Below are positions 8,998-60,504 of a stretch of DNA of 64,000 nt, piece after piece (positions within the stretch are counted from its first letter, which is position 1; each line of letters opens with the position of its first letter). The stretch is from positions 160,358-224,357 of the IMG/VR virus record IMGVR_UViG_3300036770_006893; one strand, given 5' to 3'. The position numbers and the translations under genes were made by a program. A model generated the notes under the pieces. That model was not told where the DNA came from, ran no database searches, and saw only the letters and a list, made by a program, of their open reading frames with translations.

Positions 8998-11658
8998 TTA
9001 CGGAATTAAATTAGTACAAATCGATGGTAGAGTTATATACTGATATGGGCTGCAATCAACCCAAGAGGCATCTGCACGTTGCCAATCTGCAAAACTTACT
9101 TCGTGCTTAATATTAACGTAGTATAGGCCACAATGTAATTCATCTATGCAATTAATATGATTAATAGCTAAATATAATCGACCAGATGCTGCTGCTTTAA
9201 GAGACAGGTCGGATCCTATAAAGAAAGGCGATCCGTTTTCACCAATTTTGCCTATTAGTGATAGGGAAGGTAAGTGTTGAGCTTCTTGTAGTTTGCATGA
9301 AGTTAAATTGTTTGAGATACCATTAGGACCGGATTGTAGAGGAACGGGTGTTGTAACGGTGGATGGGGACAGAACAGACGATGGGTAGTACACGACTCCA
9401 GTAGCCCCAAACTCTAATTCTTCTTCATCTACTATGTCTATAAAAGTATCTTTCCACGAAGGGGTTCTGGCTCCAACATATATATCAATAGATTCTCTTT
9501 CTATAAGTCTGTATTCAACGTTGCAACAACAGCTTGGGTTTCTAAGCATATCTAGTATAAAAATACCTCCGCCATCAGCTAATTTGTCGGTTAGTGTAGC
9601 ATCACAAATTTCTATACTTGGACATTCACAAATAGCGTCTCTTGGGAAGGGCCCATTTTTAAGACTATCTATTAATGGACATACGGGTTGTTTGTTTGAC
9701 TGTGTGGCATATCGATAATATCTCGAATCAATGGGGTTATAGTACGCAGCCTTATACCACTCATTGTCTGTTGGTAAGAAATATTTTGCGTCGTTGTTTC
9801 GCTTAATTAAATGTATATTCCTTGGCGATACATCAGAAGGTATACTATAGGCGCCATCTTCTGTGTCTCCGAAATTATTGTGTAACCAATTACAGTATCT
9901 TATGGCGGTTAGCCAGGTAACAAAATTAACTGGTTTATGGTCCATATTTTGTTTTAGATAGTATTCATATCTATCTTTTAACGGATTGAATCTTCTGATA
10001 ATTCCTCCGTTATTATCATCTTCCATTTCTTGGTGATATAGTCGTAAGTGATCGGAAGATTGATCGAATGCTACAGAATTTAGAAATGCTATAAACTCAT
10101 AGTTAGTTACTTCATACTTATGGATTTTGTAGCTATATTTTACTCTTCCAAAACCAAGCGAACTAGATAGATTGCAAGGCTCGTTTACATCGGCGAAACA
10201 CTTGATATCTAATGGGTTATTATACGATGCTATTCTAAAACCAAATTGTGAAGACACCTGATCAAAATTATTGGAATACCGAGACGATAAGCTAAACGCA
10301 TCGATTTCCATTAAGCTACTAGCATAGGAACCGCCCCTAAGTACTTTATGTAAGGTATTATCTCCTGTTGATTCTGTCCACTCCCAAACATTTCCATTTT
10401 GATCAAAAGTACCATACCCACTCTGTCTACCATTAGTACCTACTGTTGTAACTATAAAAGCATAGTCTGTGGGGTCGCAGTCTATACATCCGGCAAAATT
10501 AATAGAAGATCTAACATCAGGAGATGGACTTGGAGTAGGAGAAACTATTGGACAGTCCGCCGTTGCGCAACCGCAGTTATCGTTTTTTACCACTACAATT
10601 TTAGAATCTTCTAGATGTGTTTCTAGATCAAGTACTCTAATTGATACAGTGGCGCTATCAGATGATTCTAGTCTAGTTAATAAAAGAGTAATGTCTTGAT
10701 TGCCATCGTATTTGGCAACAAATTCTATTTCACTAGGCACGATTTTTGTAATACTATCATAATCATTGGAAAATATGTTGACTTTGTATCTATGAGAAGA
10801 TATTAATGGTCCTATAGATGCCTGTATAATACAATCATTTAATGCTAAATTCGGAGTAATAGAAGGAGTAGGAGATGGGGCAGGGCAAGAGGTTTCGCTA
10901 GGGGTCGGTGTTGGCGTGGCTGTTCTAGTGGGTGTTGGTGTGGGCGTTCTTGTTGGTGTCTTAGTAGGTGTGGCGGTTTGTGTTGGGGTAACGGTCGGAG
11001 TACTAGTTGATGTGCGTGTGGGTGTGTTGCTAAGAGTTTGGGTTGGTGTGATAGTTATGCTAGATGTTGGGGTCAGGCTAGCAGTAAGGCTTACGGTGAT
11101 AGACGGAGTAGGGGTATGAGTCAAAGAAACCGAAGGGGTCGGAGTTTGTGTTGGAGTGGTGGAGGGTGTCGGGTTTGGGGTAGGCGTTACAGAAGCTGTT
11201 ACGCTAGGTGTCGGATTGGGGGTTGGTGTGCATGTTGGGGTTGGGGTGGCAGATACGCTTATACTTATACTAGGAGTCACCGAGACACTCGGGGTAACAG
11301 TAGGGGTGTTAGTTGGCGTTATCGTTGGTGTGGCGGTTGGTGAGGGTGGTGGAGGAATATCCTCAGAAGTTACTTGACCTATCCAGTTACCTGTGCGGGC
11401 ACTAACTACTAACCACCTACTACCATTCCATGCCCAATGACCATTATCGTTTGGAGAACTATAATTAGTTCTGGAATCATTTATGGGGGACCTAGGATCT
11501 ATAAAAGTTATTCGACGCCCTCTTTCGTACTCTATACTATGAAGCTTATTTATTGTAAGCGTATCAAAACGGATAGATCCAGGTGCGTTAGGCTCATAGA
11601 CTGGCCTATTAAAATATGATGTGACCGACCTAAAGCCTACTCGTCTATAAATTGCCAT
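8998..11658 (-). CDS. Multidomain virion/adhesin-like protein: Pro/Thr stalk, FGE-sulfatase (CLec) domain, LecA-like domain
   Basis: YGTFDQNGNVWEW, RGGSY, GFRIA, KYEVTN.EF..FLN, NEWYKAAYY; SLIGKIGENG.PFFIG...SGRLYLAIN. Confidence 0.75.
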   Translation of the reverse strand: MAIYRRVGFRSVTSYFNRPVYEPNAPGSIRFDTLTINKLHSIEYERGRRITFIDPRSPINDSRTNYSSPNDNGHWAWNGSRWLVVSARTGNWIGQVTSEDIPPPPSPTATPTITPTNTPTVTPSVSVTPSISISVSATPTPTCTPTPNPTPSVTASVTPTPNPTPSTTPTQTPTPSVSLTHTPTPSITVSLTASLTPTSSITITPTQTLSNTPTRTSTSTPTVTPTQTATPTKTPTRTPTPTPTRTATPTPTPSETSCPAPSPTPSITPNLALNDCIIQASIGPLISSHRYKVNIFSNDYDSITKIVPSEIEFVAKYDGNQDITLLLTRLESSDSATVSIRVLDLETHLEDSKIVVVKNDNCGCATADCPIVSPTPSPSPDVRSSINFAGCIDCDPTDYAFIVTTVGTNGRQSGYGTFDQNGNVWEWTESTGDNTLHKVLRGGSYASSLMEIDAFSLSSRYSNNFDQVSSQFGFRIASYNNPLDIKCFADVNEPCNLSSSLGFGRVKYSYKIHKYEVTNYEFIAFLNSVAFDQSSDHLRLYHQEMEDDNNGGIIRRFNPLKDRYEYYLKQNMDHKPVNFVTWLTAIRYCNWLHNNFGDTEDGAYSIPSDVSPRNIHLIKRNNDAKYFLPTDNEWYKAAYYNPIDSRYYRYATQSNKQPVCPLIDSLKNGPFPRDAICECPSIEICDATLTDKLADGGGIFILDMLRNPSCCCNVEYRLIERESIDIYVGARTPSWKDTFIDIVDEEELEFGATGVVYYPSSVLSPSTVTTPVPLQSGPNGISNNLTSCKLQEAQHLPSLSLIGKIGENGSPFFIGSDLSLKAAASGRLYLAINHINCIDELHCGLYYVNIKHEVSFADWQRADASWVDCSPYQYITLPSICTNLIP
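10860..11350 (-). repeat. Pro/Thr mucin-like stalk (about 160 aa)
   Basis: PSPTATPTITPTNTPTVTPS...PTRTATPTPTPS. Confidence 0.9.
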
Positions 11659-18578: not shown

Positions 18579-18588
18579 AGTGGTCTCC

Positions 18589-19662
18589 TTAAAGACCAAT
18601 ACACCTTTGTATAGTTTTAGCGGTATTATCCCATGAGTATTTTTTAGCCGTATTGATACCATTTATATTCGTTTTTATACCGTTTTGATATACATGTCTC
18701 ATATATCCTATTGCTTGATCTATTTGTTTTTGGCTTATTTTAGCCCAATGTCCTTGGCCTTTAAACGCTTTTCCATCGAATGCTGGTTCTGTAGTATCTA
18801 TGTCGATAAGATACGAATTTTGGCTATTGCAGAATTCTGTATGGGCTGAGAAATTGGTTGCTATTACTGGCTTATTCATTGCCATGCACTCTAGTAGTTC
18901 AAGATTCCAGCCTTCTGCTCTGGATGGAAATATACCGCAATCTGCCTGGGCTATTAATTCGGCTATTTGAAAATGCGTATCTACACCATTAAATAACTTA
19001 ATGTTGTTGTGACTATAGATATTTTTCCATTTTTCTAATTCTTCTTTAGATGAGTAAGAGTTTGTGTTTTCAGACGCCAAGATCCATAGTTCTACATCTT
19101 CATTATCAGGAAATGCATCCCGAAAAATATTTAATAGTATATCATGCCCTTTTCTAATTTCCCACTTACCAATATTAAGAAAAACAAACTTATTCTTGTA
19201 TTGATATTTCTGATTAAGTTCTGCATTAAAAATATTTAGATCAACACCCAAAGGGCAAACAAAAGTCTCCGTGTCAATATTATTCTTTTCAATTATATTT
19301 TTTGCCCATTGACTAGTAACAAATAATGCATCTGGAACGGTCATGTGTTTTTTTTCAAGATCGTTAAAAGTATCAAGCTCAAAAAAAGGAAAGGCAAAAT
19401 ATTTTCCTCTACCTATTTTTTGTATAAGATCAAACTGATGCCAAATTTTAACGAAAGGGGCGTCTATATCTAAGTTATTGACGGAATTAACTACAAGCTC
19501 AGAGAAGAAATCATATTCCTTTTGATCTTCTACATAAGAGCTACCTATAGGAAAAAGACTAATATTTTTAGAAAATGTATTATATATGCTTTTAAGTATA
19601 TTTTTTGATACTATACCATATCCAGTGCTATTTATAGGACAAGAGACGTTTATATTGTTCAT
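18589..19662 (-). CDS. GT4-family (GT-B) glycosyltransferase
   Basis: TGYG, KWE.RKG.D.L, FPSRAEGWNL..LE.MA..KPVI.T. Confidence 0.85.
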   Translation of the reverse strand: MNNINVSCPINSTGYGIVSKNILKSIYNTFSKNISLFPIGSSYVEDQKEYDFFSELVVNSVNNLDIDAPFVKIWHQFDLIQKIGRGKYFAFPFFELDTFNDLEKKHMTVPDALFVTSQWAKNIIEKNNIDTETFVCPLGVDLNIFNAELNQKYQYKNKFVFLNIGKWEIRKGHDILLNIFRDAFPDNEDVELWILASENTNSYSSKEELEKWKNIYSHNNIKLFNGVDTHFQIAELIAQADCGIFPSRAEGWNLELLECMAMNKPVIATNFSAHTEFCNSQNSYLIDIDTTEPAFDGKAFKGQGHWAKISQKQIDQAIGYMRHVYQNGIKTNINGINTAKKYSWDNTAKTIQRCIGL

Positions 19663-21411: not shown

Positions 21412-21613
21412 TTAGATATTAATATTTGTTTGTTAGGCCTTTGTGAATTCCTAAGAGGATGCAGCTAACAAAAACTATAGCAAAAACTACATTCATATGT
21501 GTATTATAGCGCATGGAGCAGGATAGGCAAGCGGTTTTATAAGCCTAAGGCACACTGTTAATAATTAATCTAGTGTCACGTACTATGACAATATTTTGGT
21601 TTATTGTCTGTAA

Positions 21614-22387
21614 TTATATTTTAAGCCTATGTTCTTGAAACTGCTCTTGGAAATCGTCCATTGACTCGTGTACTTTGTGTATCGGTGGTTCGCCACCAGA
21701 TTCTAATAACCAGTGTTTAAGCCAAAAGTTTTTGTTTCTTAATAGGCGGTTTTCAAGAGATAAGTATCCGGTATGAACAACAAAAGGTAGATTGTTTCCC
21801 CTGAGGCTTTGTATGTCGCTTGGAAAAGCTTTGCATAAAACCAAATTACCATTAGAGTCTATTAATTCACATGTATCGCTTTTTGTAGTGTCTATAAATC
21901 CGTTGTTTTTTATTGCAAAATTAACAGGACCCCTAAATAAACCAGACTTATGCATATACCATTTTGGTGTTATGGATGAATAATATTCATATGTTTTATA
22001 TAGATTGATAGATGGTATCATATATGATTGACTATTGTCGTAAATTAAATTGGAGGCAGCGGCATACCATATTGGCTTTTGCCATATTGGTATGTATTCA
22101 TCCATATCTAGGCCTATTTTTATTTGATGTGTGCTAGAAGTAGATTGAAGAGCTAGATTTTTAATCTTACCATCTAGTAGATAATCAGAGTAGGGTATGT
22201 CTGATGATATAATTTTTAAATTATTATATAATCTTTGCTCACTAGTAAGCACAGATAGAGTTTCATCCTCACTAGTATTTACACATATAACCACTTCATC
22301 AGCCATAGCGCAAAAGTTTTTAACTGAGTATTTATAGTTAAAATTATTTTTTATTAGATTGAATGCTGATGAGTATATAGAAATCAT
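21614..22387 (-). CDS. GT-A fold glycosyltransferase
   Basis: ADEVVI...S.D.T, KN.AL, LDMDE (DxD), H.GY. Confidence 0.7.
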   Translation of the reverse strand: MISIYSSAFNLIKNNFNYKYSVKNFCAMADEVVICVNTSEDETLSVLTSEQRLYNNLKIISSDIPYSDYLLDGKIKNLALQSTSSTHQIKIGLDMDEYIPIWQKPIWYAAASNLIYDNSQSYMIPSINLYKTYEYYSSITPKWYMHKSGLFRGPVNFAIKNNGFIDTTKSDTCELIDSNGNLVLCKAFPSDIQSLRGNNLPFVVHTGYLSLENRLLRNKNFWLKHWLLESGGEPPIHKVHESMDDFQEQFQEHRLKI

Positions 22388-23241
22388 TTGATTATTATTT
22401 TATCACTTGTTGATATATTATAAGCTTTATTAATTTGTTCGATTTGATTTAATTGATTTTTGGCTATACTTTTACACGCGTCAATATTGATTTTGGATAG
22501 ATCAATATCTGTTTTTGGAGTACATGATGGGAGTATGTATATGTCTCCGTATCTTGATACTGAGTAACAGAAATTTACATGTTCTATGTGTCCACATGTT
22601 GACCAATAACAATCTGGTCTTTTTAATATATCTGTTTTGATTAGTGCAAATCCGCTAAATCCAGACATGATTTTTATAGCACTATTTTGTTTCCACAATT
22701 GCCTATCAGAATCTAATAAAAATGGACAATCGGTAAAATACAATCCGTTATTGCCAAAATAATCTCTGAACGCCGAAACATCGTAAAAACTATTTTGTGT
22801 TTCATTGGTCATGAGATCTTCTATTTGATTCTGTCTTGTATTAGCAACTACCATTGCGCAGTTTTTCACATTTGTTATGAATTCATATAGTATTATAAAA
22901 TTTTGATTAGTAAATATAATATCAGTATCTATTAAAAGAGTATATTCAGAATCGATGTTTTTTATTAATGTTTTTGCCTTATTTCTATAATAGGCCATAA
23001 GCACAAGTCTTTCCACAAGGCTTACAGAACCAAATTGGGGAGTATTTAATTTTTCTGATATTATTGATCCTGATTTATTTTTGATCCAAGAATTAATAAT
23101 TTCTAATGTTTTATCTTCAGAGTCATTCTCATAAAAGTAAAAACTAAAATCTCCCAGTGTGGACAAGTCATCTAATGAACGCAAAGTTCGATAGATGTGT
23201 TTTTCAGAATTTCTCCACAATCCTATTACAGAAATATTCAT
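22384..23241 (-). CDS. GT-A glycosyltransferase (CAP59/ANP1-like)
   Basis: YENDSEDKT, R...MA.YRN, IDTD, YD..A.RD, SGFSG, EHV.F. Confidence 0.7.
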   Translation of the reverse strand: MNISVIGLWRNSEKHIYRTLRSLDDLSTLGDFSFYFYENDSEDKTLEIINSWIKNKSGSIISEKLNTPQFGSVSLVERLVLMAYYRNKAKTLIKNIDSEYTLLIDTDIIFTNQNFIILYEFITNVKNCAMVVANTRQNQIEDLMTNETQNSFYDVSAFRDYFGNNGLYFTDCPFLLDSDRQLWKQNSAIKIMSGFSGFALIKTDILKRPDCYWSTCGHIEHVNFCYSVSRYGDIYILPSCTPKTDIDLSKINIDACKSIAKNQLNQIEQINKAYNISTSDKIIIK

Positions 23242-23251
23242 TGAATATAAT

Positions 23252-24627: not shown

Positions 24628-26274
24628 ATGAATACAAATATAACTCTGGTGACAGGAATATGGGACCTTGGTAGATCTAATCTATCAGATGGTTGGTCTA
24701 GGGCTTTTGAGCACTATATAAATAATTTCAGGCTACTGCTAAATAATACTAAAGATATAAATTTGGTAGTATTTATAGACAAGTCGTTGGAAGAATTAGT
24801 GTGGTCTATAAGAGAAAAGACTAATACCAGAGTATACCACCATTCAGTAGAAGAGTTTGATAGTAATTTTTTCCCATTTCGTGAAGAAGTAGAAAAAATA
24901 AGAAAAAACGAAGAATGGTTGAACCAAGCGGGTTGGCTTAGAGAAAGCACTCAAGCTAGGCTAGAAATGTACAATCCTTTAGTTATGAGCAAGATGTTCC
25001 TGCTGCATAATGCTAAAATATATAATGATTTTAATAGTGATTATCTTTTTTGGATAGATGGCGGGATAACAAATACTGTGCATCCAGGTTATTTTAGTAG
25101 CGATAAGGTTCTTCAGAAAATATCTGAAAAATTAGATAATTTTTTGTTTATATGCTTTCCATATAATACAGAATCCGAAATACATGGGTTCAAAATAGAA
25201 GGAATGAGAAAATTTAGTCAGTGTGATTCTGTTAAAAGAGTTGCTAGGGGAGGTTTTTTTGGTGGAAAATCTGAGCTTATATCACCAGCTAATGATATGT
25301 ATTATGCTTTGCTTAAGGATACTTTGTCTCAAGGATATATGGGAACCGAAGAAAGCATATTTACTATCATGTCTTATTTAGACAGCAAAAGTTTTAGAGT
25401 AGAGATGATAAATGAGGACGGCCTTATATCTACCTTCTTCGAAAATGTAAAAAACAATAAATTTATATCACTAAATAAATCACAAAAAATACACAAAAAC
25501 AAAAACATAGAGCTGTATATAAATACATTTAACTCTCCAAAACAACTTAAAATGGTGATAGAAAGCTTTGAACGGCACGATACAAATTTCCTAAATAAAA
25601 CAAAAAAGTTTCTAATTAATAATTCAACAAATGAAAAATTTGATACAGAATATGACGAGATATGTAATCAATATAACTTTAATCAAATCAAAAAAGGTAA
25701 TATAGGTATATGCGGTTCCAGACAATTGGCCGCAGAAATGTTCTATAAAAATAAAAGCCAGTATATGTTATTTTTTGAGGATGATATGTTAATAGATTTT
25801 TCTGGTGTTTGTAGATTCGGTTTTCCCAAAAAAACAAAAGATCTCTTTAATAATTTAGTTTCAATAATGGATCAAGAAAATTACGATTTTATTAAGCTCA
25901 GCTTTTCAGAATTCTACGGACATAATGGAATGCAATGGAGTTGGCATAATGTTCCACATAATAAAAAAATAGAATATTTTGGCGAAATCAAAAACAAACC
26001 ATTCACATTATTTAAAAACATAAAATCAAAGAATGGTGTTCCGTATGCCGACGGAGAGGTTTACTACTCCAACTGGCCACATATTATAAACCAAGAAGGC
26101 AATAAGAAAATGTTTATAGACACCAAATGGGCCAACCCTTTTGAACAAACTTGGATGAGCCATATTTACTCATTGACAAAAGAACAAAAAGTATTTCCAG
26201 CAATATTGCTATCTAGTCCAATAACACATAATAGGGTAGATTTTTATGAGTCTTCAGAAAGAAAAGAAAACTAA
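24628..26274 (+). CDS. HtrL/YibB(WlaTC)-like glycosyltransferase fused to a second GT-A domain
   Basis: TLVT..WD.GR, YN.LVMSK, WIDGG, GGFFGG, GTEE; second domain with FFEDD. Confidence 0.7.
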   Translation: MNTNITLVTGIWDLGRSNLSDGWSRAFEHYINNFRLLLNNTKDINLVVFIDKSLEELVWSIREKTNTRVYHHSVEEFDSNFFPFREEVEKIRKNEEWLNQAGWLRESTQARLEMYNPLVMSKMFLLHNAKIYNDFNSDYLFWIDGGITNTVHPGYFSSDKVLQKISEKLDNFLFICFPYNTESEIHGFKIEGMRKFSQCDSVKRVARGGFFGGKSELISPANDMYYALLKDTLSQGYMGTEESIFTIMSYLDSKSFRVEMINEDGLISTFFENVKNNKFISLNKSQKIHKNKNIELYINTFNSPKQLKMVIESFERHDTNFLNKTKKFLINNSTNEKFDTEYDEICNQYNFNQIKKGNIGICGSRQLAAEMFYKNKSQYMLFFEDDMLIDFSGVCRFGFPKKTKDLFNNLVSIMDQENYDFIKLSFSEFYGHNGMQWSWHNVPHNKKIEYFGEIKNKPFTLFKNIKSKNGVPYADGEVYYSNWPHIINQEGNKKMFIDTKWANPFEQTWMSHIYSLTKEQKVFPAILLSSPITHNRVDFYESSERKEN

Positions 26275-27532
26275 AAACCAAAACAGCATATTTGTGCAGA
26301 TAGCTGCTTATAGGGATCCACAATTGATGCCGACCCTAGACGATATGCTAGATAAGGCCATGAGACCTGATGATCTAAGCATAGGAATAGCTTGGCAACA
26401 CTGCGATAATGATAAATGGGACAATTTAGACAAATACATCAATGATAATAGATTCAAAATTATAGATATAAACTATAAGGAATCTAAAGGAGTTTGTTGG
26501 GCAAGAAACATGGTTCAGCAGTTATATAACAATGAAAAATATACTCTTCAATTAGATAGTCATCATAGATTTGAAAAAGATTGGGATAAAACTCTAATAG
26601 ATATGGTTAAAAATTTACAAAAAAAGGGATATAAAAAACCATTATTAACATCTTATATACCTAGTTTCGATCCGGATAATGATCCAGCAGCAAGAGTTTT
26701 GCAACCATGGAAAATGAATTTCGACAGATTCATACCTGAAGGCGCTGTATTTTTTATACCATCTAATTTTGATCCATGGGACAATGTTGATGAACCACTT
26801 CCGGCAAGATTTTATAGTGCTCACTTTGCTTTTACTGTCGGACAATTTTCTAAAGAAGTTCAGCATGATCCTGAGTATTATTTTCACGGAGAAGAAATCA
26901 GTATAGCAGCACGAGCTTATACGCATGGGTATGACTTATTTCATCCAAACAAGGTTGTTTGTTGGCATGAATACACAAGAAAAGGCAGAACAAAACAATG
27001 GGATGATGATCCGAAGTGGGTAGAGAAAAATAATTTGTGTCATCTAAAAAACAGAAAACTTTTTGGTATGGACGGCGAAAAACAAGATATTGATTTTGGC
27101 AAATATGGATTTGGTAGCCGTAGGACTCTTAGAGAGTACGAAAAATATTCAGGTTTGAGCTTCAAGGACAGATCCATCCACAAGTCTGTACAACAAAAAA
27201 TAGACCCAATATCTGCAAATACCTTGTCCTTAACCGACGAAGAATTTGATGCTAGTCTCATGAGTATTTTCAGACACTGTATAGATATTTCTTATGATCA
27301 GGTTCCAGAAAGCGATTATGATTTTTGGGCAGTTGCATTTAAAAATGCTAAAGGCGAAGATATGTATAGGCAGGATGCTGATAGAAATGAAATTATTTCT
27401 ATGAAAGCAGACCCAGATGGATATTGCAAAGTTTGGCGAGAGTTTCAAACAAAACAAAAACCCTATAGTTGGATTGTTTGGCCCCATAGCGAAAGTAAGG
27501 GATGGGCCAGTCCAATAACAGGAGTACTATAA
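26246..27532 (+). CDS. GT60-type polypeptide alpha-N-acetylglucosaminyltransferase (Gnt1/Gnt2-like)
   Basis: IFVQIAAYRD, G.CWAR, LQLDSH.RF...WD, F.GEEI...AR.YT.GYD..P....WH.Y. Confidence 0.85.
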   Translation: MSLQKEKKTKNQNSIFVQIAAYRDPQLMPTLDDMLDKAMRPDDLSIGIAWQHCDNDKWDNLDKYINDNRFKIIDINYKESKGVCWARNMVQQLYNNEKYTLQLDSHHRFEKDWDKTLIDMVKNLQKKGYKKPLLTSYIPSFDPDNDPAARVLQPWKMNFDRFIPEGAVFFIPSNFDPWDNVDEPLPARFYSAHFAFTVGQFSKEVQHDPEYYFHGEEISIAARAYTHGYDLFHPNKVVCWHEYTRKGRTKQWDDDPKWVEKNNLCHLKNRKLFGMDGEKQDIDFGKYGFGSRRTLREYEKYSGLSFKDRSIHKSVQQKIDPISANTLSLTDEEFDASLMSIFRHCIDISYDQVPESDYDFWAVAFKNAKGEDMYRQDADRNEIISMKADPDGYCKVWREFQTKQKPYSWIVWPHSESKGWASPITGVL

Positions 27533-27569
27533 TTCAAATCAAATTCAACATTTTTATAACGAGGAATTC

Positions 27570-28310
27570 ATGTGGCTTGAGTGCTTAAAAGTATACGATG
27601 TAAATTTTTCAAAAGTCCGAGTAGGCAATGCTAGTGATGGCGGATATATCTTGAACGATGAGATCTTAAAGTGCGCCGAAAAATTAGTATCTATAGGTAT
27701 AGGTTATGACGATGGCTTTGAGTTAGACTGGGTAGACAAATTTCCAGACTCAACTATAGAAATGTATGATGGGACATATCCATGTAATAATATTTGTAAT
27801 AAATATCCAGAAAAAATAAATCGTAATATTTTTTATTATCACAAAAATGTAGGCAATAAACCAGATCAAATAAATTTATCAAGTATAATTAATAAAGATA
27901 ATAAAAAAACTTTACTAAAAATAGATATTGAAGGTGGCGAGTATGAAATATTTGACTCAATAACCATAGGCAATAATATTATTGGCTTAACTCTAGAAGT
28001 ACACGATTTGTATATGCCAATTAATCAAAATAAGCTGTATCAAATAATTAACAATAATTTTCAAAATATGATACTATTCCATATTCATGGAAATGCTCAT
28101 GGTAATTCATTCGAATTAGAGTACGTAAACTCTTCAAATGAAAAAATAATACTTCCTAATTTTCCTCATGTTATTGAGCTTTCTTTTATTAATAAAAACA
28201 TAGTTGGTAACTATGGTTTAGAAACTAATACTTTTCCTGTTCTTGGTTTAGACGCATCAAATAAAGAAGATTCTCCAGATATAGACTTATACTGGGTAAA
28301 TAAAGTATGA
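27570..28310 (+). CDS. FkbM-like SAM methyltransferase
   Basis: RVG...DGGY, SIGI..D..FE, LKIDIEG.EY, FH.H.N, ELSF. Confidence 0.8.
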   Translation: MWLECLKVYDVNFSKVRVGNASDGGYILNDEILKCAEKLVSIGIGYDDGFELDWVDKFPDSTIEMYDGTYPCNNICNKYPEKINRNIFYYHKNVGNKPDQINLSSIINKDNKKTLLKIDIEGGEYEIFDSITIGNNIIGLTLEVHDLYMPINQNKLYQIINNNFQNMILFHIHGNAHGNSFELEYVNSSNEKIILPNFPHVIELSFINKNIVGNYGLETNTFPVLGLDASNKEDSPDIDLYWVNKV

Positions 28311-29152
28311 TATATATATCTGTTTGTTGTTTACCAGATAGAATAGCTAACGAACATATCTGTCGTAAATTTTTATTTGGTTTATTAAATCAAAAAAGCA
28401 AGCTAGACTATCAGATAATATTAAATATACCAAAATATTTTATAAACTATAAATCATATGAAATACCAAGTTGGTTTTTTACTTATCTTAAAGACTATCC
28501 AAACATAATCTTATTAAGAGATGATAATGATTACGGCCCAATAAGTAATATCATTCATCCATTAAAACATATTAATTTTAAAAAAAATGATATTTTATTA
28601 GTATGTGACGATGACCATTTATATAGTCCGTATATGATAGACTATCATTTTAAAAAGCTCATAGAATATCCAGACAATCATTCTATATGCTTTAGGGGTA
28701 ATCAGCCGATGGAGCTTAGAACATGGTACGATAATGGTAAAAAATTCGGAAAATTTTATCAAAGCTCAGTACTTTTTCCAACAAAAAAAGATCTTTACTT
28801 AAAACTCCCAGATCATTGGCATAGTGTCTCTTACTGGGTAAAAAATCTAAATTTAGAATATTTGATGAGTCCTGATTTTTTGAACATGACATGGAATAAT
28901 GATTTACTTATGGGTTATTATGGTTGGGATAACAATATGTTTTTTGCATGCTGCTCATATGAGTGTGAAACAGACTATAGGCCAGTCAATTACGACGGTA
29001 GGGGATCAAATAGCTTTCCAATAGACGAAATGCTACCATTTGAATCTAATAGCGGCTGCAATTTATTTAGAGCAAAAGATACAAGCGATATATGGGATAA
29101 TCAAAAATTTTGTAGCGTAATAAATAAAGATAAGGGTATTATCGAACTATGA
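28307..29152 (+). CDS. GT-A glycosyltransferase
   Basis: P.R, LNIP, DYGP, VCDDD..Y, ND. Confidence 0.7.
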   Translation: MIYISVCCLPDRIANEHICRKFLFGLLNQKSKLDYQIILNIPKYFINYKSYEIPSWFFTYLKDYPNIILLRDDNDYGPISNIIHPLKHINFKKNDILLVCDDDHLYSPYMIDYHFKKLIEYPDNHSICFRGNQPMELRTWYDNGKKFGKFYQSSVLFPTKKDLYLKLPDHWHSVSYWVKNLNLEYLMSPDFLNMTWNNDLLMGYYGWDNNMFFACCSYECETDYRPVNYDGRGSNSFPIDEMLPFESNSGCNLFRAKDTSDIWDNQKFCSVINKDKGIIEL

Positions 29153-29919
29153 GTATAGTATTATCTTTGACTACTATTCCAGACAGAATGAATTTTAGGG
29201 GAGATCATTCTACTACTAAAATTTGTTTAGACAACTTATTAAATCAGACATATCCAGAATATGAAATTCATCTAAATATCCCCCGTGAGTATATGGGTAA
29301 GATAGTAAATATACCAGAATGGGTTCATTCCTATGTAAATAAGTATAAAAATCTTAAAATATTCACCGTAGATGACTATGGCCCAGTAACCAAATTATTA
29401 CCAACCCTACAAAGGATATCGGACCCTGATTGTATAATTATAATAGTAGATGACGATCTCTATTATAATACTGATATGCTAAACTATCATATAAGCATCA
29501 GAAACAAATATCCCAATTCTGCTATAGGTTTTGCTGGCATAACCGCGATAAATGGCAGTTGTCATTTTTGTACATCTCTATCGAAAGATACTAGGGTTAA
29601 AATGTTGGAGGGTTATAAAACAGTATCTTTTCTTAGAAAATTTTTTGAAGTAGAAGACTTTATAGAAAACTTTGCCACAAAAACCTGGAACGATGATGTG
29701 GCTATTTCTGCTTATCTTGGATATAGAAATATAGAAAAAATAGTTGTATCATATGATAAAGACACGGATTTCTCTCCTAGGGTAGAGTCTTTTCCAGTTA
29801 TAGGCCACATACCAACAGAGCGTAGCGGGTGTTCGAATTTTAGATCATCTAAACTATCAGTTGAGGTTAATGATAATATGGCTAATGAATGGTATAGGCT
29901 TGGTTACCTTGAGAGATAA
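29149..29919 (+). CDS. GT-A glycosyltransferase (paralog of the previous gene)
   Basis: SLTTIP.R, LNIP, DYGP.TKLLP, VDDD..Y, DDV.IS. Confidence 0.75.
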   Translation: MSIVLSLTTIPDRMNFRGDHSTTKICLDNLLNQTYPEYEIHLNIPREYMGKIVNIPEWVHSYVNKYKNLKIFTVDDYGPVTKLLPTLQRISDPDCIIIIVDDDLYYNTDMLNYHISIRNKYPNSAIGFAGITAINGSCHFCTSLSKDTRVKMLEGYKTVSFLRKFFEVEDFIENFATKTWNDDVAISAYLGYRNIEKIVVSYDKDTDFSPRVESFPVIGHIPTERSGCSNFRSSKLSVEVNDNMANEWYRLGYLER

Positions 29920-29969: not shown

Positions 29970-30404
29970 ATGAAAAAAATAATTCTGATTGCTGTTTTTC
30001 TATATTCATCTAGTGCATTTTCTCAAAATTATTCCTTTAATTCAGGATCTGTTTATGCCCCTAGTCCAGTTGCTGGTATCGGTTATAATCTTGATCGTCT
30101 TGTAAACAATAGCATGAGTAATTCAGACACATATGCCTCCAGAACATATGCTAATGGAGACTATGCTTATAAAACATCACTAGCCAACATCAATAATCAA
30201 GTTGCATACTCTATGTATTTAAATAACGATGCTCTAAAAACTAGTGTTTATTTTGAGAAAAAACAAATGAATCTATATAATAGAACCCTATTAGAGTTTC
30301 AAAAAAAAGAGATATCAAGAATGCGAAGATATCAAAACTTTTCTAAAGAAGATTTAGATGATATGTTTGATGTTCGCTACAAGACTGGTTTTATAATGCC
30401 ATAA
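29970..30404 (+). CDS. Secreted hypothetical protein
   Basis: Signal peptide MKKIILIAVFLYSSSAFS; AGGAG RBS. Confidence 0.6.
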   Translation: MKKIILIAVFLYSSSAFSQNYSFNSGSVYAPSPVAGIGYNLDRLVNNSMSNSDTYASRTYANGDYAYKTSLANINNQVAYSMYLNNDALKTSVYFEKKQMNLYNRTLLEFQKKEISRMRRYQNFSKEDLDDMFDVRYKTGFIMP

Positions 30405-31279
30405 CCCTCGTATCTCTTTTGTCCAGAGTACGCTGGGTCTTTTAAAGGTATGGCTGTTTTTCTGAAAAAGCTAATATAGTCTTGCGAATTCATTTTTTTA
30501 CCAAAATTATTTTTGAAATAAGAGCACACCAGTGCCGCACAACCAACAGCAAACGGATTGCTCATGCTTGTTCCGCTCATCAGCGCATATCTATTATTTG
30601 GAACACAGCTTAATATATTATGCCCAGGTGCCAAGAAGTCCAATGATTCTCCACTACATGTGAAGCTAGTTCTATCTAGATTCTCATCTATAGCTCCTAT
30701 ACTAATAGTTTCTTTATATTTAGCCGGATACATTATATCGCTCGATGGACCAGAGTTACCTGCTGCACAAAATATTATACATCCCTTATTGCTTGCATAC
30801 TTTATAGCGTCGTGTAAATGATGCGAGTCATATGGCGACCCAAGCGACATAGTTATAAAATCCACACCGTAATCTGCTGACCATATTATTGCTTTAATAA
30901 TAGATTCTAATGAGCCATTTCCATCATCAGCTAAGGCTTTGACCGGAACTATTTTAGCCTTCGGTGCTACTCCAACCATACCTGTTGTATTATTATTTGC
31001 GCATATGGTTCCACAAACATGAGTTCCATGACCATTTTTATCTATGGGGTCTTTACCTTCATGAATTGCATTAAACCCCTCTAATATATTTTTTTTTATA
31101 TCTTCATGAAAAATATCACATCCAGTATCTATTACTGCTATCTTTACTCCTAGGCCTTCACTTTTGATCCACTGTTTTTGAATATCAAATTTTTTTATTT
31201 CCCAACCAATTATTTGTTGCTGATTTATTCCAAATATATCTTCTCTTATATATGGTAATAGTCCGTATTTTTTTTTCAT
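30377..31279 (-). CDS. Subtilisin-like S8 serine protease
   Basis: IDTG (Asp), HGTHV (His), AAGN, GTSM (Ser). Confidence 0.92.
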   Translation of the reverse strand: MKKKYGLLPYIREDIFGINQQQIIGWEIKKFDIQKQWIKSEGLGVKIAVIDTGCDIFHEDIKKNILEGFNAIHEGKDPIDKNGHGTHVCGTICANNNTTGMVGVAPKAKIVPVKALADDGNGSLESIIKAIIWSADYGVDFITMSLGSPYDSHHLHDAIKYASNKGCIIFCAAGNSGPSSDIMYPAKYKETISIGAIDENLDRTSFTCSGESLDFLAPGHNILSCVPNNRYALMSGTSMSNPFAVGCAALVCSYFKNNFGKKMNSQDYISFFRKTAIPLKDPAYSGQKRYEGYGIIKPVL

Positions 31280-32838
31280 ATAAAGTCAGATGATACTGAT
31301 GGTGATGGAGGTGTTTGTGTTGGTGTTCTCGTTGGTGTTATAGTTGGTGTTGGAGTTGTAGTCGGCGTAACTGCTGGAGTATCGTTTGGGTCTATTGGAA
31401 CAGACTCACAGCTTAATTGACTAAAGCTTGCTGTTTCATACATCAATGGTAATAATTCTCTTGGTGGGAAACATTGACCATTACAGCATATTCCAATCGC
31501 TGGGGCAGTAGTTACTGCGGTTATCACCCAGCCAGCATCAGAAAATTCTTGGGCAAATGCTTCAGAAGTTGCTAAGAATTGATCCATATCATTCCAAACT
31601 ATTGACACCTCTCTATAATTGCCTAAATTGTCTGTAACGCCTACTTCAGCAACCTCATAAGTACAATTTGATTGTATGCATGGTGTTGGTGTGGGTGTTG
31701 GTGTTATAGATTTCGTTATTGTTGGTGTTGTTGTTGGCGTTGTGGTTGGTGTTGAAGTAGATGTTATAGATGGTGTTATTGTTGGGGTTGGCGTTGGCAT
31801 TGGAGTAGAAGTTGGATCACACTCAACAATTGGCCCACTACAGTCAATAGTACCTATTAATTTAGTATTAGTTGGGCCAGGAGCAACGCAACTCTTAAAT
31901 AAGACCACAGGATCATTAGTTGTTGCATCATAACCCACTAGAACAATAAATGTTACACCCGTGTGGCAATATTGTAATTCGCACCTTAATACCAGTTGCG
32001 AGTCTACTATATCTTCTGTACCGTTTGTAGCAAAAGAGAACGTATCAAATCTTGATCCGCATATATCCCCATTCAAATTATTCATGTTAATTGTTTTATT
32101 TGCCAAAATTTGCGACCCATCAGATTTTACCAAAATTGGCATAAATATTGTTCTATCACAACAATGACCCCTTGCGCATGTTGGATTCACTAATCCTATA
32201 CCAGGAATATCTATAGGCACATTAATATCGTTAGCATAATAAGCATATCCATTAATTATGCCTTTTAAATTTTGTGGAATAGATACAATTTCACAATCTG
32301 GTGGTTGATCAACACACAAAGCTGGAACAACACATCGACAAGATACTGGATCAAATGTCTCTCCTGGTTGGCATATAATACCTTGGCAAGTATTACATGA
32401 TAGTGGAGTGTGCTGACTTTCTTGCACTGTTTTTATACTAGTGCCTTTTGGATATCCTGATATCTGATCATAACTTGTTGTGTAGTGTTTAGATCCTATA
32501 CTTATAATCGACCCTAGCGTTTCTGAACATAACCTATACGAGTCAGATTCCGGATATCCCGCATTAAATTTATTTAAAGAAATGTTGTACTTGAATTCTC
32601 TAACAGCTTTTTCTGTTAATGTTATATTAATTACTTTAGAATTATTATACGTAACTTCGTTATTATATAGACCTATATAGCTTTTAAAATTTTGATCATA
32701 AATATTTTTATCGTGTTTTATATACCTGTTTTCTATATTATTATCAATACTAATATTTATATTTTCTCTATTTTGATTAAACACAGCCAGGTTAGTTTGT
32801 TGATTTACTGGCCGGTTAATATTGCTAAATATGGTCAT
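31276..32838 (-). CDS. Cys-rich protein with Pro/Thr stalks (probable virion surface protein)
   Basis: PT tracts at about 31310-31380 and 31680-31810; domain shared with 7351..7767. Confidence 0.6.
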   Translation of the reverse strand: MTIFSNINRPVNQQTNLAVFNQNRENINISIDNNIENRYIKHDKNIYDQNFKSYIGLYNNEVTYNNSKVINITLTEKAVREFKYNISLNKFNAGYPESDSYRLCSETLGSIISIGSKHYTTSYDQISGYPKGTSIKTVQESQHTPLSCNTCQGIICQPGETFDPVSCRCVVPALCVDQPPDCEIVSIPQNLKGIINGYAYYANDINVPIDIPGIGLVNPTCARGHCCDRTIFMPILVKSDGSQILANKTINMNNLNGDICGSRFDTFSFATNGTEDIVDSQLVLRCELQYCHTGVTFIVLVGYDATTNDPVVLFKSCVAPGPTNTKLIGTIDCSGPIVECDPTSTPMPTPTPTITPSITSTSTPTTTPTTTPTITKSITPTPTPTPCIQSNCTYEVAEVGVTDNLGNYREVSIVWNDMDQFLATSEAFAQEFSDAGWVITAVTTAPAIGICCNGQCFPPRELLPLMYETASFSQLSCESVPIDPNDTPAVTPTTTPTPTITPTRTPTQTPPSPSVSSDFI

Positions 32839-59159: not shown

Positions 59160-59783
59160 TCATCCCAGTCTTCTGTCATGTTTTTTATATCTCCTATAAA
59201 TAGAAAAAACTTTATTTATTAAATTTGAATCAAGATTATTACGAATAAACTCGTCGTCATTATCGGTTATATATGCTTGTATTTCATCATTTAATACAGT
59301 TTTGGCATATCCTTTTGTAAGTATATAGTTTGATACTTTAGCAAAACCTTTACGATGTTTTTTGATTAAGTCATCTATTTCATTCCTGTAGTTTTCATCA
59401 TATCCATACATCGCGTGAGATAATTCGTGCCGTAGAGTACTATTATTTTGAGCTCCTATAATATAGAAATCATCAACTCTATATTTTAGCAAGGTTAATA
59501 ATTCTGTCTCTTGTGGTGTTAATGGATCAAATAGTCCGTCTTTAAAAGGACTCAGAACACAACTGGGAAAGTTAAAACCGATCCATATTTCACTATATAA
59601 ATCTGCGCCATATTTTTTGCTATAAAAACTTTTTATATCACCAAGAGTAAAAATTTTGTTACGAAATTTATTACTAGGACTCTCGTAATATTCTTGAAAA
59701 CGTATAAAAGTTTCACCAAGTTCTTTTTGAGAGTCTGCGCTAATCCAAACGCTGTTATAGGGCTGGTTTTTGATCTTTAACAT
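59160..59783 (-). CDS. Hypothetical protein with HExxH motif
   Basis: F.RFQEYYESP, W.GFN.P, HELSH, DE.QAY. Confidence 0.55.
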   Translation of the reverse strand: MLKIKNQPYNSVWISADSQKELGETFIRFQEYYESPSNKFRNKIFTLGDIKSFYSKKYGADLYSEIWIGFNFPSCVLSPFKDGLFDPLTPQETELLTLLKYRVDDFYIIGAQNNSTLRHELSHAMYGYDENYRNEIDDLIKKHRKGFAKVSNYILTKGYAKTVLNDEIQAYITDNDDEFIRNNLDSNLINKVFSIYRRYKKHDRRLG

Positions 59784-60504
59784 ATTCGCCTTGCGTCCTT
59801 AGTTGCAAAATATAATTATATAGATCTATCTCTAATGGTATTTTTGATTTAATTTTTTCTATTAGATCATTTGGATAATTAGGTTTATTGCTACTTTTAT
59901 TAGTTATTATATTATTTAGTTTTAGATTAAATGGATTTGTTTTATTAAATATTTCAATGTCTTTGTCTAGGGTATGTAAATGAAAAATAAAATTATAGCA
60001 ATTTTTGTATATGTCTTTAGCTATGTCATATTTTTCTTGGTCTGATGCGTTTATATTGTATGTAACATAATTCATATAAAGCTTACCGCAGTCATAAATT
60101 AGGGCGTCAAGAGATTTTTCGTTATTTAATAAATCATCTATAGGTATTCGGCAGAAAAATTCATTGTGACTAATGATTCTGTCTATGGGGTTCCTGACGC
60201 ATACTGATCTATATGTTAGGCTTTTGTTTAAATCGAAGATGTTTTCTATTTGTAGATATTTACTATGATCAACGAATACTTTTGTTTTAGGATGTATTAT
60301 TTTTTTAATACATACATTAGATTCTTGGCCTAGTGTAATGTTGTTGTGGGTAAGGTCGCTTATGTATATGGGTTGCTCATAAAAATTATTCCCGTCATTT
60401 TTTAGACAGGCTCGGTATATCATGCGCCTAAAACTTGTTCCTCCACATTTTGGTATATGATTAAACACCAGATACTGTGGCGGTGAATTATAAGCTAAGT
60501 CCAT
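59755..60504 (-). CDS. Sulfotransferase family 2 protein
   Basis: F.HIPKCGGTS (5'-PSB), RNP.DR..S (3'-PB), D..LY. Confidence 0.8.
   Translation of the reverse strand: MDLAYNSPPQYLVFNHIPKCGGTSFRRMIYRACLKNDGNNFYEQPIYISDLTHNNITLGQESNVCIKKIIHPKTKVFVDHSKYLQIENIFDLNKSLTYRSVCVRNPIDRIISHNEFFCRIPIDDLLNNEKSLDALIYDCGKLYMNYVTYNINASDQEKYDIAKDIYKNCYNFIFHLHTLDKDIEIFNKTNPFNLKLNNIITNKSSNKPNYPNDLIEKIKSKIPLEIDLYNYILQLRTQGEYVKDQKPAL

Follow-up and report, generated by a model that had tools for sequence, protein, structure and literature searches.

Does a large freshwater phage glycosylate its own proline- and threonine-rich proteins? We asked this question of a window of 64,000 nucleotides (the whole stretch of DNA analysed, positions 160,358 to 224,357 of the IMG/VR record IMGVR_UViG_3300036770_006893), for which a preliminary description, made from the sequence alone, had proposed that an island of glycosyltransferase genes at 24628-29919 initiates, extends, methylates and possibly sulfates mucin-type O-glycans on the Pro/Thr stalks of virion fibres tipped with lectin domains. 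Our analysis confirms the observation on which this proposal rests, namely a co-oriented block of sugar-modifying genes in the same window as three proteins with long Pro/Thr tracts. The interpretation is partly supported, since the family calls hold and the idea of a functional link between the GT60-family enzyme and Pro/Thr tracts passes the co-occurrence test proposed for it, while the virion location of the tract-bearing proteins of this window and the sulfation are not shown. The features of the locus are compiled in the table below.

Coordinates, strand and predicted identity of the features considered in this study (positions are those of the 64,000-nucleotide window).
Position	Strand	Length (aa)	Assignment	Sites, domains and tracts
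1647..7283	-	1878	Modular "beads on a string" protein, candidate acceptor	FGE-sulfatase-like module; Pro/Thr tract, 6009-6404; second FGE-like module; Pro/Thr tract, 2919-3227; DUF285 repeats
8998..11658	-	886	Modular protein, candidate acceptor	Pro/Thr tract, residues about 98-275 (about 10834-11367), followed by an FGE-sulfatase/SUMF1-like domain
18589..19662	-		GT4-family glycosyltransferase, possible accessory enzyme	
22384..23241	-	285	GT2-like protein (weak match), possible accessory enzyme	
24628..26274	+	548	Tandem GT-A glycosyltransferase	HtrL_YibB-like N-domain with invariant W-x-D (D144, 25057-25059); GT-A C-domain with invariant E384-D385-D386 (25777-25785)
26246..27532	+	428	GT60-family glycosyltransferase, putative initiating polypeptide HexNAc transferase	D-S-H motif, residues 104-106 (26555-26563); extra conserved beta-rich C-terminal domain, about residues 339-428
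27570..28310	+	246	FkbM-like methyltransferase (tentative), accessory	
28307..29152	+	281	Small GT-A glycosyltransferase, paralogue 1, accessory	DDDH motif
29149..29919	+	256	Small GT-A glycosyltransferase, paralogue 2, accessory	DDD motif
29970..30404	+	144	ORF of unknown function, last plus-strand gene of the island	
30377..31279	-		Subtilisin-family protease	Start overlaps the stop of the 520-aa protein gene
31276..32838	-	520	Cys-rich protein, nearest candidate acceptor (1.4 kb from the island)	Pro/Thr tracts, 31654-31845 and, at the C-terminus, 31279-31377
59755..60504	-		Sulfotransferase-family protein	

The first step was to establish which enzymes the island encodes. Five consecutive plus-strand ORFs, flanked by minus-strand genes, occupy exactly the interval proposed, although the HtrL-like gene comes first and is followed by the GT60 gene, which corrects the order previously given. 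The N-domain of the first protein matches Pfam PF09612 (E=3e-12; 47.1 bits against a cut-off of 24.1) and NCBIfam TIGR02192 at the domain level only, and its AF2 model (pLDDT 87) shows two domains split at residues 282-291, whose best PDB fold matches are the tandem GT-A enzymes K4CP, LH3, COLGALT1, LARGE1 and PmHS2. The second protein matches PF11397 "GlcNAc" (E=2.6e-75) and phrog_24687 (E=3.8e-176), and D104, S105 and H106 are invariant in 32 homologues. Its AF2 model (pLDDT 90) resembles polypeptide GalNAc-transferases most closely, since these are the top 22 PDB fold matches (E about 2e-9), and no signal peptide or membrane anchor was found. Characterised GT60 members transfer alpha-GlcNAc to Thr of mucin-like repeats or to hydroxyproline of Skp1.

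The remaining genes of the island are less securely assigned. The FkbM call is tentative because the match to PF05050 (29.4 bits) is above its cut-off of 22.7, while that to TIGR01444 gives only 23 bits against a cut-off of 37.7; this gene has no homologue in the other GT60 loci, although FkbM genes occur in the relative L458 (L-numbers denote the relatives and loci used for comparison). The two small GT-A proteins have PF00535 hits below the cut-off (E=2.6e-4 for paralogue 1, and a weak hit for paralogue 2), but both carry DDD motifs and are 29% identical to each other (E=3e-21). The atlas neighbours of paralogue 1 are viral GT2/GT64-like clusters, and it has homologues in 6 other loci. The sixth plus-strand ORF has only a sub-threshold Pfam hit, but is conserved at the end of the cassette in two relatives, L025 and L037. 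The protease (PF00082, E=1e-54) is a conserved neighbour of the island in the closest relatives, with homologues in L004-L007, L025, L037 and L458. Upstream of the island, a second, minus-strand cluster of sugar genes includes the GT4-family gene (PF13692/PF00534, with NCBIfam GT4 families at the domain level), where the relative L458 has GT11, an epimerase/dehydratase, FkbM and GT2 genes in the same position. For this gene and for the GT2-like gene (PF00535, E=3e-4, below cut-off), a role as accessory enzymes is only a possibility.

We next examined the Pro/Thr tracts. They are composed of about 36% Thr, 26% Pro and 11% Ser, a composition that, over 40-130 residues, is far beyond chance. They are mostly degenerate at the DNA level, so they are not recent tandem expansions. 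Neither the enzymes nor the Pro/Thr proteins have signal peptides or membrane segments, which fits modification in the cytoplasm before assembly. None of the three proteins has a structural-protein match, and no capsid or tail module is found in the window. The proposed lectin tips are a fair description for some relatives, in which ConA-like, Lcl_C, LRR and beta-propeller domains are found, while in this window the globular modules are FGE-sulfatase-like and DUF285 domains. The only basis for sulfation is the sulfotransferase-family gene (PF03567, 31.4 bits, above the cut-off of 22; no NCBIfam hit), which lies 30 kb from the island.

The comparison with other loci reveals that the conserved core, which had been missed in the preliminary description, is a pair of genes, GT60 and the tandem GT-A, that co-occur in 42 of 47 IMG/VR loci and in all four cultured GT60-positive phages. 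The pair flanks or precedes a hypervariable cassette of sugar-modifying genes, with 32 different compositions in 39 loci, to which the methyltransferase and the small GT-A paralogues belong.

Is this module associated with Pro/Thr tracts? The co-occurrence of GT60 and Pro/Thr-rich proteins across phages had been set beforehand as one of the conditions on which the hypothesis would stand or fall, and the outcome favours it. In 882 kb of GT60 loci there are 23 Pro/Thr-tract ORFs, whereas 603 kb around rIIA in the same clade hold none apart from this phage's own copies. Fifteen of the 23 lie within two genes of the module, against 22% expected (binomial p=8e-6), and they are often directly upstream and on the same strand. 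However, 17 of 27 GT60 lineages have no Pro/Thr ORF within 10 kb. In the reverse direction, 10 of 120 viral loci picked only by a (PT)6-coding pattern carry GT60 or its partner, compared with none of 118 collagen-like and 120 P[E/K]-repeat loci (Fisher p=1.4e-5); restricted to loci below 40% GC, the counts are 9 of 63 against 0 of 88 (p=2.7e-4). Among the GT60 copies in these loci, only one pair exceeds 70% identity. These tests are not phylogenetically corrected, the pattern scans return the first 120 matches and not a random sample, and some of the association could reflect genome-level co-occurrence in one broad group of low-GC jumbo phages. The 40 Pro/Thr proteins near the module fall into about 20 similarity groups with no detectable similarity between groups, and the tract is therefore their shared feature; their other domains include LRR, DUF285, ConA-like, Lcl_C, beta-propeller and FGE-like.

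Cultured relatives offer a view of the possible acceptors. XacN1, in which GT60 is ORF334 and its partner ORF330, has at least two virion proteins that are positive in Schiff staining (PMC5852040), although these bands were not identified and XacN1 has other glycosyltransferases. The giant baseplate-adjacent protein has a Pro/Thr tract plus an extra C-terminal domain in XacN1, Xoo-sp13 and RAS14, while its homologue in the GT60-negative RsoM2USA ends before that point; that homologue, the counterpart of XacN1 ORF325, was found in virions by mass spectrometry (PMC8504454). XacN1 ORF350 is a 190-aa conserved domain extended by a roughly 190-aa Pro/Thr tract and a globular domain.

Taken together, the explanation we favour, with somewhat more confidence than not, is that the island is a phage-encoded, cytoplasmic protein O-glycosylation module. 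In this view, the GT60-family enzyme would start the glycan by transferring a HexNAc, most likely alpha-GlcNAc from the host's UDP-GlcNAc, onto Thr (and Ser) residues in the Pro/Thr-rich linker tracts of phage-encoded modular proteins, here those of the 520-, 886- and 1878-aa proteins, which link binding-type globular modules. The tandem GT-A would add the next sugars with its two active sites, and a fast-changing set of accessory enzymes would tailor the chain; in this phage these are the FkbM-like methyltransferase and the two small GT-A paralogues, and in other phages they include fucosyltransferase-like, GT25-like and PLOD-GT-like enzymes, methyltransferases and a carbamoyltransferase. Our analysis itself establishes the gene families, the conserved motifs, the ppGalNAc-T-like fold of the model, the tandem GT-A architecture, the pairing of the two enzymes, the variability of the cassette and the statistical association with Pro/Thr tracts, and the virion glycoproteins of XacN1 and the virion location of the RsoM2USA protein come from the literature, whereas the donor sugar, the acceptor residue, the order of the steps, the virion location in this phage and the physical role are inferred, in the absence of biochemical evidence for any phage GT60. 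The acceptor residue deserves particular caution because GT60 members can also act on hydroxyproline, and one relative has a weak P4H-type oxygenase nearby.

Two alternatives, both unlikely but not negligible, retain part of this model. In the first, the module glycosylates proteins but not the Pro/Thr tracts; the target could be a capsid or tail subunit, as in mycobacteriophages, or a host protein, and Pro/Thr genes would sit nearby only because both occupy the same fast-evolving accessory regions of jumbo phage genomes. The unassigned XacN1 bands, the 17 lineages without a nearby Pro/Thr ORF and the organization of the island as an inverted, moron-like block among unrelated genes agree with this reading. 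Against it, collagen-like and P[E/K]-repeat genes, which are also accessory or fibre-type, never co-localise with the module in the 238 loci examined, about 20 dissimilar groups of Pro/Thr proteins sit directly beside it, and the fold is closest to enzymes whose substrates are Thr/Pro-rich repeats.

In the second, considered equally unlikely, the tracts are glycosylated as proposed, but the proteins are not part of the virion, being instead soluble or cell-associated factors, for example adhesins, decoys or enzymes, released at lysis or acting inside the infected cell. The Pro/Thr proteins of the window do sit among non-structural genes (rIIA/B, ligase, clamp loader and nucleotide metabolism) and lack structural-protein matches, and FGE-sulfatase-like and DUF285 domains are typical of bacterial surface or secreted proteins. 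On the other hand, in the XacN1 group the tract-bearing proteins lie in structural modules, the RsoM2USA homologue of one of them was detected in virions, one Pro/Thr protein, in L198, matches "virion structural protein" PHROGs (E=5e-10), and signal peptides are absent.

A third possibility, which we consider improbable, is that the enzymes build or alter a host envelope polysaccharide (LPS, capsule or exopolysaccharide), for example for superinfection exclusion, with the tandem GT-A acting as a capsule-type polymerase. The tandem GT-A resembles the capsule polymerases K4CP and PmHS2, HtrL/YibB is encoded in the E. coli LPS core cluster, and a PAP2 phosphatase and GT4/GT32-like genes are present in the window. 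However, the island has no membrane protein, flippase, polyprenol-phosphate transferase or exporter, GT60 is not a known polysaccharide family, XacN1 virions carry glycoproteins, and the Pro/Thr association is left unexplained. Finally, hypermodification of phage DNA, as in glucosyl-hmC or the glycosylated 5hmC/5hoC pathways, is very unlikely: although phage GT-A and GT-B clusters that build varied glycans on DNA are known (bioRxiv 10.1101/2023.12.21.572611; PMC13326640), the C-domain of the tandem GT-A weakly hits the PHROG "beta-glucosyl-HMC-alpha-glucosyltransferase" (E=2.4e-4) and a nucleoside deoxyribosyltransferase-like gene lies nearby, the window has only ThyX and no dCMP hydroxymethylase, ThyA homologue, 5mYOX/TET enzyme or cytosine methyltransferase, neither DNA-glycosylation paper mentions GT60 or HtrL families, the GT60 fold matches peptide-modifying enzymes, and the Pro/Thr association is again not explained.

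These results indicate that, beside the phage-encoded protein glycosylation already known, there is probably a different form, widespread in environmental jumbo phages, in which an enzyme of the type that starts mucin-like glycans in eukaryotes is paired with a two-headed, putatively extending enzyme. Across many uncultured phages this pair sits next to genes for proteins with long Pro/Thr stretches, so these phages probably sugar-coat their own modular proteins. Dense O-glycans would stiffen, extend and protease-protect the linkers, giving mucin-like stalks, and, by analogy with XacN1 and its relatives, the proteins that carry them are probably virion appendages or decorations.

The 224-kb contig (IMG/VR 3300036770_006893), whose last 64 kb form the window, comes from a low-GC (about 33%) jumbo phage that encodes rIIA/rIIB, a DNA ligase, a clamp loader, ThyX, a tmRNA and two tRNAs. 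Megablast of 25 kb of the window against cultured phages found no match. The only GT60 hit in a scan of GTDB genomes was a 10.9-kb contig (RFNS01000277.1, 72% identity) binned into a Lake Lanier “Alphaproteobacteria” MAG; it is probably a mis-binned phage fragment, and this single, weak hint about environment or host is insufficient to name a host. Within the window, five overlapping or abutting ORFs form an inverted block between minus-strand genes, encoding, in order, a 548-aa protein with an HtrL_YibB-like N-domain and a second domain, a 428-aa PF11397/GT60 protein (phrog_24687, E=3.8e-176), a weakly matching FkbM-family methyltransferase, and two small GT-A-like proteins with DDD motifs that are 29% identical to each other; a sixth ORF ends the block. 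A promoter and terminator scan of the island was not above chance (47 promoter-like sites against 39.7 +/- 6.1 in shuffled sequences), and we make no claim about the transcription unit. The positions of the features discussed here are compiled in the following table.

Features of the window discussed in the text, with their positions and strands
Feature	Position	Strand	Remarks
ClpP-like head-maturation protease	13307-14002	-
Sigma-70 region-4 protein	15242-15826	-	Likely phage sigma factor
PAP2-family phosphatase	16585-17250	-
Second sugar-gene cluster	18039-23860	-	Upstream of the island
GT4 gene	18589-19662	-	In the second sugar-gene cluster
GMP reductase/IMPDH-family gene	19785-20885	-	XacN1 also encodes a GMP reductase
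Nucleoside 2-deoxyribosyltransferase-like gene	20869-21411	-	Weak match; conserved near the island in relatives
GT2-like gene	22384-23241	-	In the second sugar-gene cluster
399-aa protein	7780-8979	-	Unusually cysteine-rich, no family match; only a short PIPTPT/PPPPQPP stretch
Glycosylation island, five ORFs	24628-29919	+
Sixth ORF of the block	29970-30404	+
Subtilisin-family protease	30377-31279	-	Overlaps the stop of the 520-aa protein gene
520-aa Pro/Thr protein	31276-32838	-	Unusually cysteine-rich, no family match
Actin-fold protein	33220-34221	-	Pfam “Volactin” (PF25216, E=3e-63)
ORF with chimallin-like hit	35067-35729		Sub-threshold, E=7.8e-4
GT32-like gene	35726-36460
tRNA-Leu(TAA)	45566-45648	-
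Ogg-like DNA glycosylase	48156-48869	-
4Fe-4S ferredoxin	50315-50707	-
Trypsin-like protease	51097-51855	-
tmRNA	52243-52595	-	Tag peptide GNTQLALAA
HNH-endonuclease-like ORF	52869-53360	+	Opposite strand, between the tmRNA and tRNA-Ile
tRNA-Ile(TAT)	53361-53440	-
SpoU-family RNA methylase	53458-54024	-
ThyX	57884-58570	-
Sulfotransferase-family protein	59755-60504	-	PF03567, 31 bits

Three minus-strand proteins of 1878, 886 and 520 aa carry long Pro/Thr tracts at essentially the coordinates given in the preliminary description, whose observation is thus confirmed. The tracts are about 36% Thr and 26% Pro and are degenerate at the DNA level, and tracts near GT60 do not differ in composition from tracts elsewhere, so there is no tract signature. 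The two larger proteins are built as beads on a string, in which FGE-sulfatase/SUMF1-like modules and DUF285 repeats are separated by the tracts. None of the enzymes or tract proteins has a signal peptide or membrane segment. Weak profile hits to SNaCT12, VTC, RRM_Thc1 and chimallin were all below their cut-offs and were not considered. The actin-fold protein, a putative phage-encoded actin homologue, is syntenic beside the glycosylation island in the close relatives L004, L006, L007, L025, L037 and L458 (our labels for their loci). The second sugar-gene cluster is also variable, since in L458 the same position (1-5790 of that locus) holds a GT11 fucosyltransferase-like gene, an NDP-sugar epimerase/dehydratase, three FkbM methyltransferases and a GT2.

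The 428-aa protein belongs by profile to Pfam PF11397 (CAZy GT60), with 254.5 bits against a cut-off of 21 (E=2.6e-75) over profile positions 94-351 of 352. In 32 GT60 homologues, D104-S105-H106, which corresponds to the D-x-H metal-binding motif of the family, and many other positions are invariant. The AF2 model (pLDDT 90) has a GT-A catalytic domain plus a conserved beta-rich C-terminal domain outside the Pfam model, and its top 22 matches among solved structures are polypeptide GalNAc-transferases, the enzymes that initiate mucin-type O-glycans (Foldseek E about 2e-9, TM about 0.5). The N-terminus (MSLQKEKKTKNQNS...) has no hydrophobic segment, so the type II membrane anchor of the Golgi-type enzymes is absent and the topology is like that of the cytoplasmic Gnt1 type.

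The 548-aa protein is modelled as two GT-A domains joined by a disordered linker at residues 282-291, each with an invariant acidic motif (D144 and E384-D385-D386). It matches HtrL/YibB only at the domain level: the Pfam hit (PF09612, 47 bits against a cut-off of 24) covers residues 4-149 only, and TIGR02192 gives 55 bits against an equivalog cut-off of 264.9. It is therefore a relative of that domain fused to a second GT-A domain and not an orthologue. Its best fold matches are tandem GT-A bifunctional enzymes, namely K4 chondroitin polymerase, LH3, COLGALT1, LARGE1 and heparosan synthase; the TM-scores are low (about 0.28) because the domain orientation differs or is uncertain, so only the tandem GT-A architecture is secure. 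Sequence searches of the PDB with GT60, the 548-aa protein, the FkbM-like protein and the first GT-A paralogue gave nothing useful, and only the fold searches were informative.

A pattern-based scan of IMG/VR with GT60 returned 47 loci. The family of the 548-aa protein is present in 42 of them, and no other family occurs in more than 20. The same pair occurs in the only four cultured phage records with GT60 (XacN1, Xoo-sp13, CM1 and RAS14). In most loci the two genes flank a cassette of 0-8 genes, while in the lineage of this window the 548-aa gene sits directly upstream of GT60 and the cassette follows. The cassette genes include fucosyltransferase-like (GT10), GT25-like, PLOD-GT-like and GT2-like enzymes and methyltransferases, to which XacN1 and Xoo-sp13 add a carbamoyltransferase. 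There are 32 different compositions in 39 loci, a modular shuffling that resembles bacterial O-antigen or capsule loci. GT60 homologues are abundant in metagenomes, where more than 7,400 clusters at 90% identity matched at E<=1e-5, on contigs up to 235 kb. In the ESM Atlas they are overwhelmingly viral, and some phage versions are fused to GT7 (beta4GalT-like) domains (about 800 aa) or to protein O-fucosyltransferase domains (about 1000 aa).

The preliminary description had proposed that GT60 is linked to Pro/Thr-rich proteins and had set their co-occurrence across phage genomes as a test, which we carried out in both directions. The GT60 loci (882 kb) contain 23 Pro/Thr-tract ORFs, while 47 loci around rIIA from the clade of this phage (603 kb) contain none apart from the window's own copies. 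Of the 23 ORFs, 15 lie within two genes of the module against 22% expected (binomial p=8e-6, not corrected for relatedness), and many are directly upstream on the same strand. However, 17 of 27 GT60 lineages have no tract ORF within the 10 kb examined. In the reverse direction, IMG/VR was scanned for a DNA pattern encoding (PT)6, and of the 120 loci returned, nine contain a GT60-family gene and one more contains the partner gene, often adjacent to the tract gene. Three of the nine are distant family members (26-30% identity) that keep D-x-H at the expected position, and among the nine GT60 copies only one pair exceeds 70% identity. Two matched controls, 118 loci with collagen-like (G-X-Y)12 and 120 loci with (P[E/K])6, gave none, so that the comparison is 10 of 120 against 0 of 238 (Fisher p=1.4e-5) or, for loci below 40% GC, 9 of 63 against 0 of 88 (p=2.7e-4). 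It is important to note that the pattern scans are first-found and not random samples, and that part of the signal may be genome-level co-occurrence rather than adjacency, which would still favour a link. The 40 tract proteins near the module fall into about 20 groups with no detectable similarity between groups, and their other domains are binding-type (LRR, DUF285, ConA-like, Lcl_C, beta-propeller and PKD). The tract itself is therefore the common denominator.

Further evidence comes from cultured relatives. In the Xanthomonas jumbo phage XacN1, ORF334 is the GT60 homologue (48% identity) and ORF330 the tandem GT-A (39%). The XacN1 paper (PMC5852040) reports at least two Schiff-positive proteins in purified virions and suggests that phage glycosyltransferases make them; the authors listed ORF334 only as “glycosyltransferase family protein” and did not identify the glycoproteins, the partner enzyme or the Pro/Thr tracts. 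The XacN1 cassette contains a carbamoyltransferase that this window lacks. XacN1 ORF325 (3313 aa), next to the baseplate wedge genes, has a Pro/Thr tract followed by about 190 further residues, and so do its homologues in Xoo-sp13 and RAS14. In the related but GT60-negative RsoM2USA, the homologous protein (ORF361) ends where the tract would begin, and 24.6 kb around it holds no tract; ORF361 was detected in RsoM2USA virions by mass spectrometry (PMC8504454). XacN1 ORF350, which lies between a “structural protein” and the head completion protein, consists of a 190-aa domain that equals the whole of Xoo-sp13 gp320, a Pro/Thr tract of about 190 aa, a globular domain and a Pro/Thr tail, which is the anchor-stalk-tip layout imagined in the preliminary description.

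In the mechanism that we propose, GT60 would initiate on Thr/Ser of the tracts in the cytoplasm, the tandem GT-A would extend the glycan, and the variable cassette would tailor it, resulting in stiff, protease-resistant, mucin-like linkers on modular and probably virion-exposed proteins. The family assignments, the invariant motifs, the modelled folds, the pairing of the two enzymes, the cassette variability and the statistical association with Pro/Thr tracts are results of our analysis, and the virion findings in XacN1 and RsoM2USA come from the literature; on the other hand, the transfer of alpha-GlcNAc from UDP-GlcNAc to Thr/Ser (or hydroxyproline), the presence of O-glycans on the tracts and the virion location of this window's proteins are inferred. 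Support for the transfer is only indirect, from the association with Pro/Thr tracts, and that for O-glycans on the tracts is only the Schiff staining of unidentified XacN1 virion bands. The interpretation in the preliminary description is partly supported. The sulfation that it considered possible was not included in the mechanism, since only a distant sulfotransferase-family gene exists; no PAPS-synthesis genes were seen in the window. The subtilisin-family gene is conserved beside the island in close relatives, and protection of the phage's own linkers from its own proteases is one speculative rationale.

Among the alternatives, the possibility that the tract proteins are glycosylated but are not part of the virion is not excluded for this window. 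A second one, that the module glycosylates other proteins and that its adjacency to tract genes is coincidental, is weakened by the repeat-type controls. Synthesis of a host envelope polysaccharide lacks a membrane or export component and does not explain the tract association. DNA hypermodification was rejected as the main explanation, because the window has no hydroxymethylase, 5mYOX/TET enzyme or cytosine methyltransferase but only ThyX, the GT60 fold points to peptide substrates, and the DNA-glycosylation papers do not mention these families.

The module can be compared with several known systems. Its GT60 enzyme shares the family, the conserved D-x-H motif and a ppGalNAc-T-like predicted fold with the eukaryotic GT60 polypeptide alpha-GlcNAc transferases (Dictyostelium GntB and Trypanosoma cruzi pp-alphaGlcNAcT) and with the Skp1 hydroxyproline GlcNAc-transferase Gnt1; its candidate substrates are Thr/Pro-rich repeats, as for the mucin-like acceptors of the protist enzymes, and like Gnt1 it is, as inferred from its sequence, soluble and cytoplasmic. 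It differs from them in being encoded by a bacteriophage without a Golgi membrane anchor, in its extra C-terminal domain and in its pairing with a tandem GT-A enzyme. As for the prolyl 4-hydroxylase partner of the Skp1-type pathway, no 2OG-Fe(II) oxygenase was found among the window ORFs scanned, one relative has a weak PF13640 hit 8 kb away, and chlorophyte proteins fuse a prolyl-hydroxylase-type oxygenase to GT60. Animal mucin-type O-glycosylation, in which GT27 polypeptide GalNAc-transferases act on PTS domains, provides the closest solved structures and a matching logic, with an initiating HexNAc transferase acting on dense Thr/Pro tracts that link globular domains and further transferases extending the glycan. 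However, the CAZy family is different, a ricin-type lectin domain is not demonstrated, the compartment would be the cytoplasm and not the Golgi, and the extension enzymes are unrelated.

In mycobacteriophage virion glycosylation (Freeman et al. 2023, Cell Host Microbe; cited in PMC12582341 and PMC11256854), phage-encoded glycosyltransferases modify the phage's own virion proteins in the cytoplasm; the targets are reportedly short C-terminal extensions of capsid and tail-tube subunits and the enzymes are reportedly not GT60, and the hosts, phage types and gene organisation differ. The bifunctional enzymes E. coli K4 chondroitin polymerase, Pasteurella heparosan synthase PmHS2, human LARGE1 and LH3/COLGALT1 share with the 548-aa protein two GT-A domains, each with a conserved acidic motif, and LARGE1 and LH3/COLGALT1 extend glycans already attached to proteins. 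Nevertheless, no sequence similarity was detectable, with no PDB sequence match at E<=1 other than noise, so membership in their CAZy families is not supported; polymerase activity is pure speculation. The fibril and capsid glycosylation clusters of giant viruses (Mimiviridae, chloroviruses) are likewise virus-encoded and clade-variable and decorate virion surface proteins, and a BFVD fold search placed the tandem GT-A near giant-virus multi-domain glycosyltransferases, although only generic ones; these viruses infect eukaryotes, their enzyme sets and acceptor proteins differ, and, as far as our searches show, no pairing of GT60 with Pro/Thr tracts has been described there.

A bolder reading, which we consider unlikely although it is not excluded, is that the GT60 and tandem GT-A pair makes phage “proteoglycans”. 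GT60 would prime Thr residues of the Pro/Thr stalks, and the two-headed enzyme would then polymerise a repeating disaccharide on that primer, as LARGE1 does on the mucin-like domain of alpha-dystroglycan or as glycosaminoglycan synthases do. The hypervariable cassette would generate phage glycan “serotypes” under diversifying selection and, if so, a large and abundant group of environmental jumbo phages would wear a variable glycocalyx.

As far as we are aware, phage-encoded glycosylation of the phage's own proteins is known experimentally only from mycobacteriophages, with hints from XacN1. Literature searches on GT60 in phages, mucin-like phage fibres and Gnt1 in phages found nothing relevant; only the XacN1 paper links this gene set to glycoproteins, and we found no description of a GT60 plus tandem GT-A core, of its hypervariable cassette or of its association with Pro/Thr tracts. 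The initiating enzyme proposed here is of a kind not known to have been characterised outside eukaryotes, the proposed acceptor type, long Pro/Thr linkers, is different, and a conserved two-enzyme core is combined with a highly variable tailoring cassette. Since three of the four GT60-positive phage records have papers describing their isolation and culture (XacN1, Xoo-sp13 and RAS14), the hypothesis is directly testable, and this, together with how widespread the module is, makes it of high interest. The module would also give a bacterial-cytoplasm route to mucin-like O-glycoproteins. Given how common the GT60 gene is in metagenomes, surface glycans could be a general, overlooked property of environmental jumbo phages, which would bear on adsorption, particle stability, grazing or immune recognition, and phage engineering.
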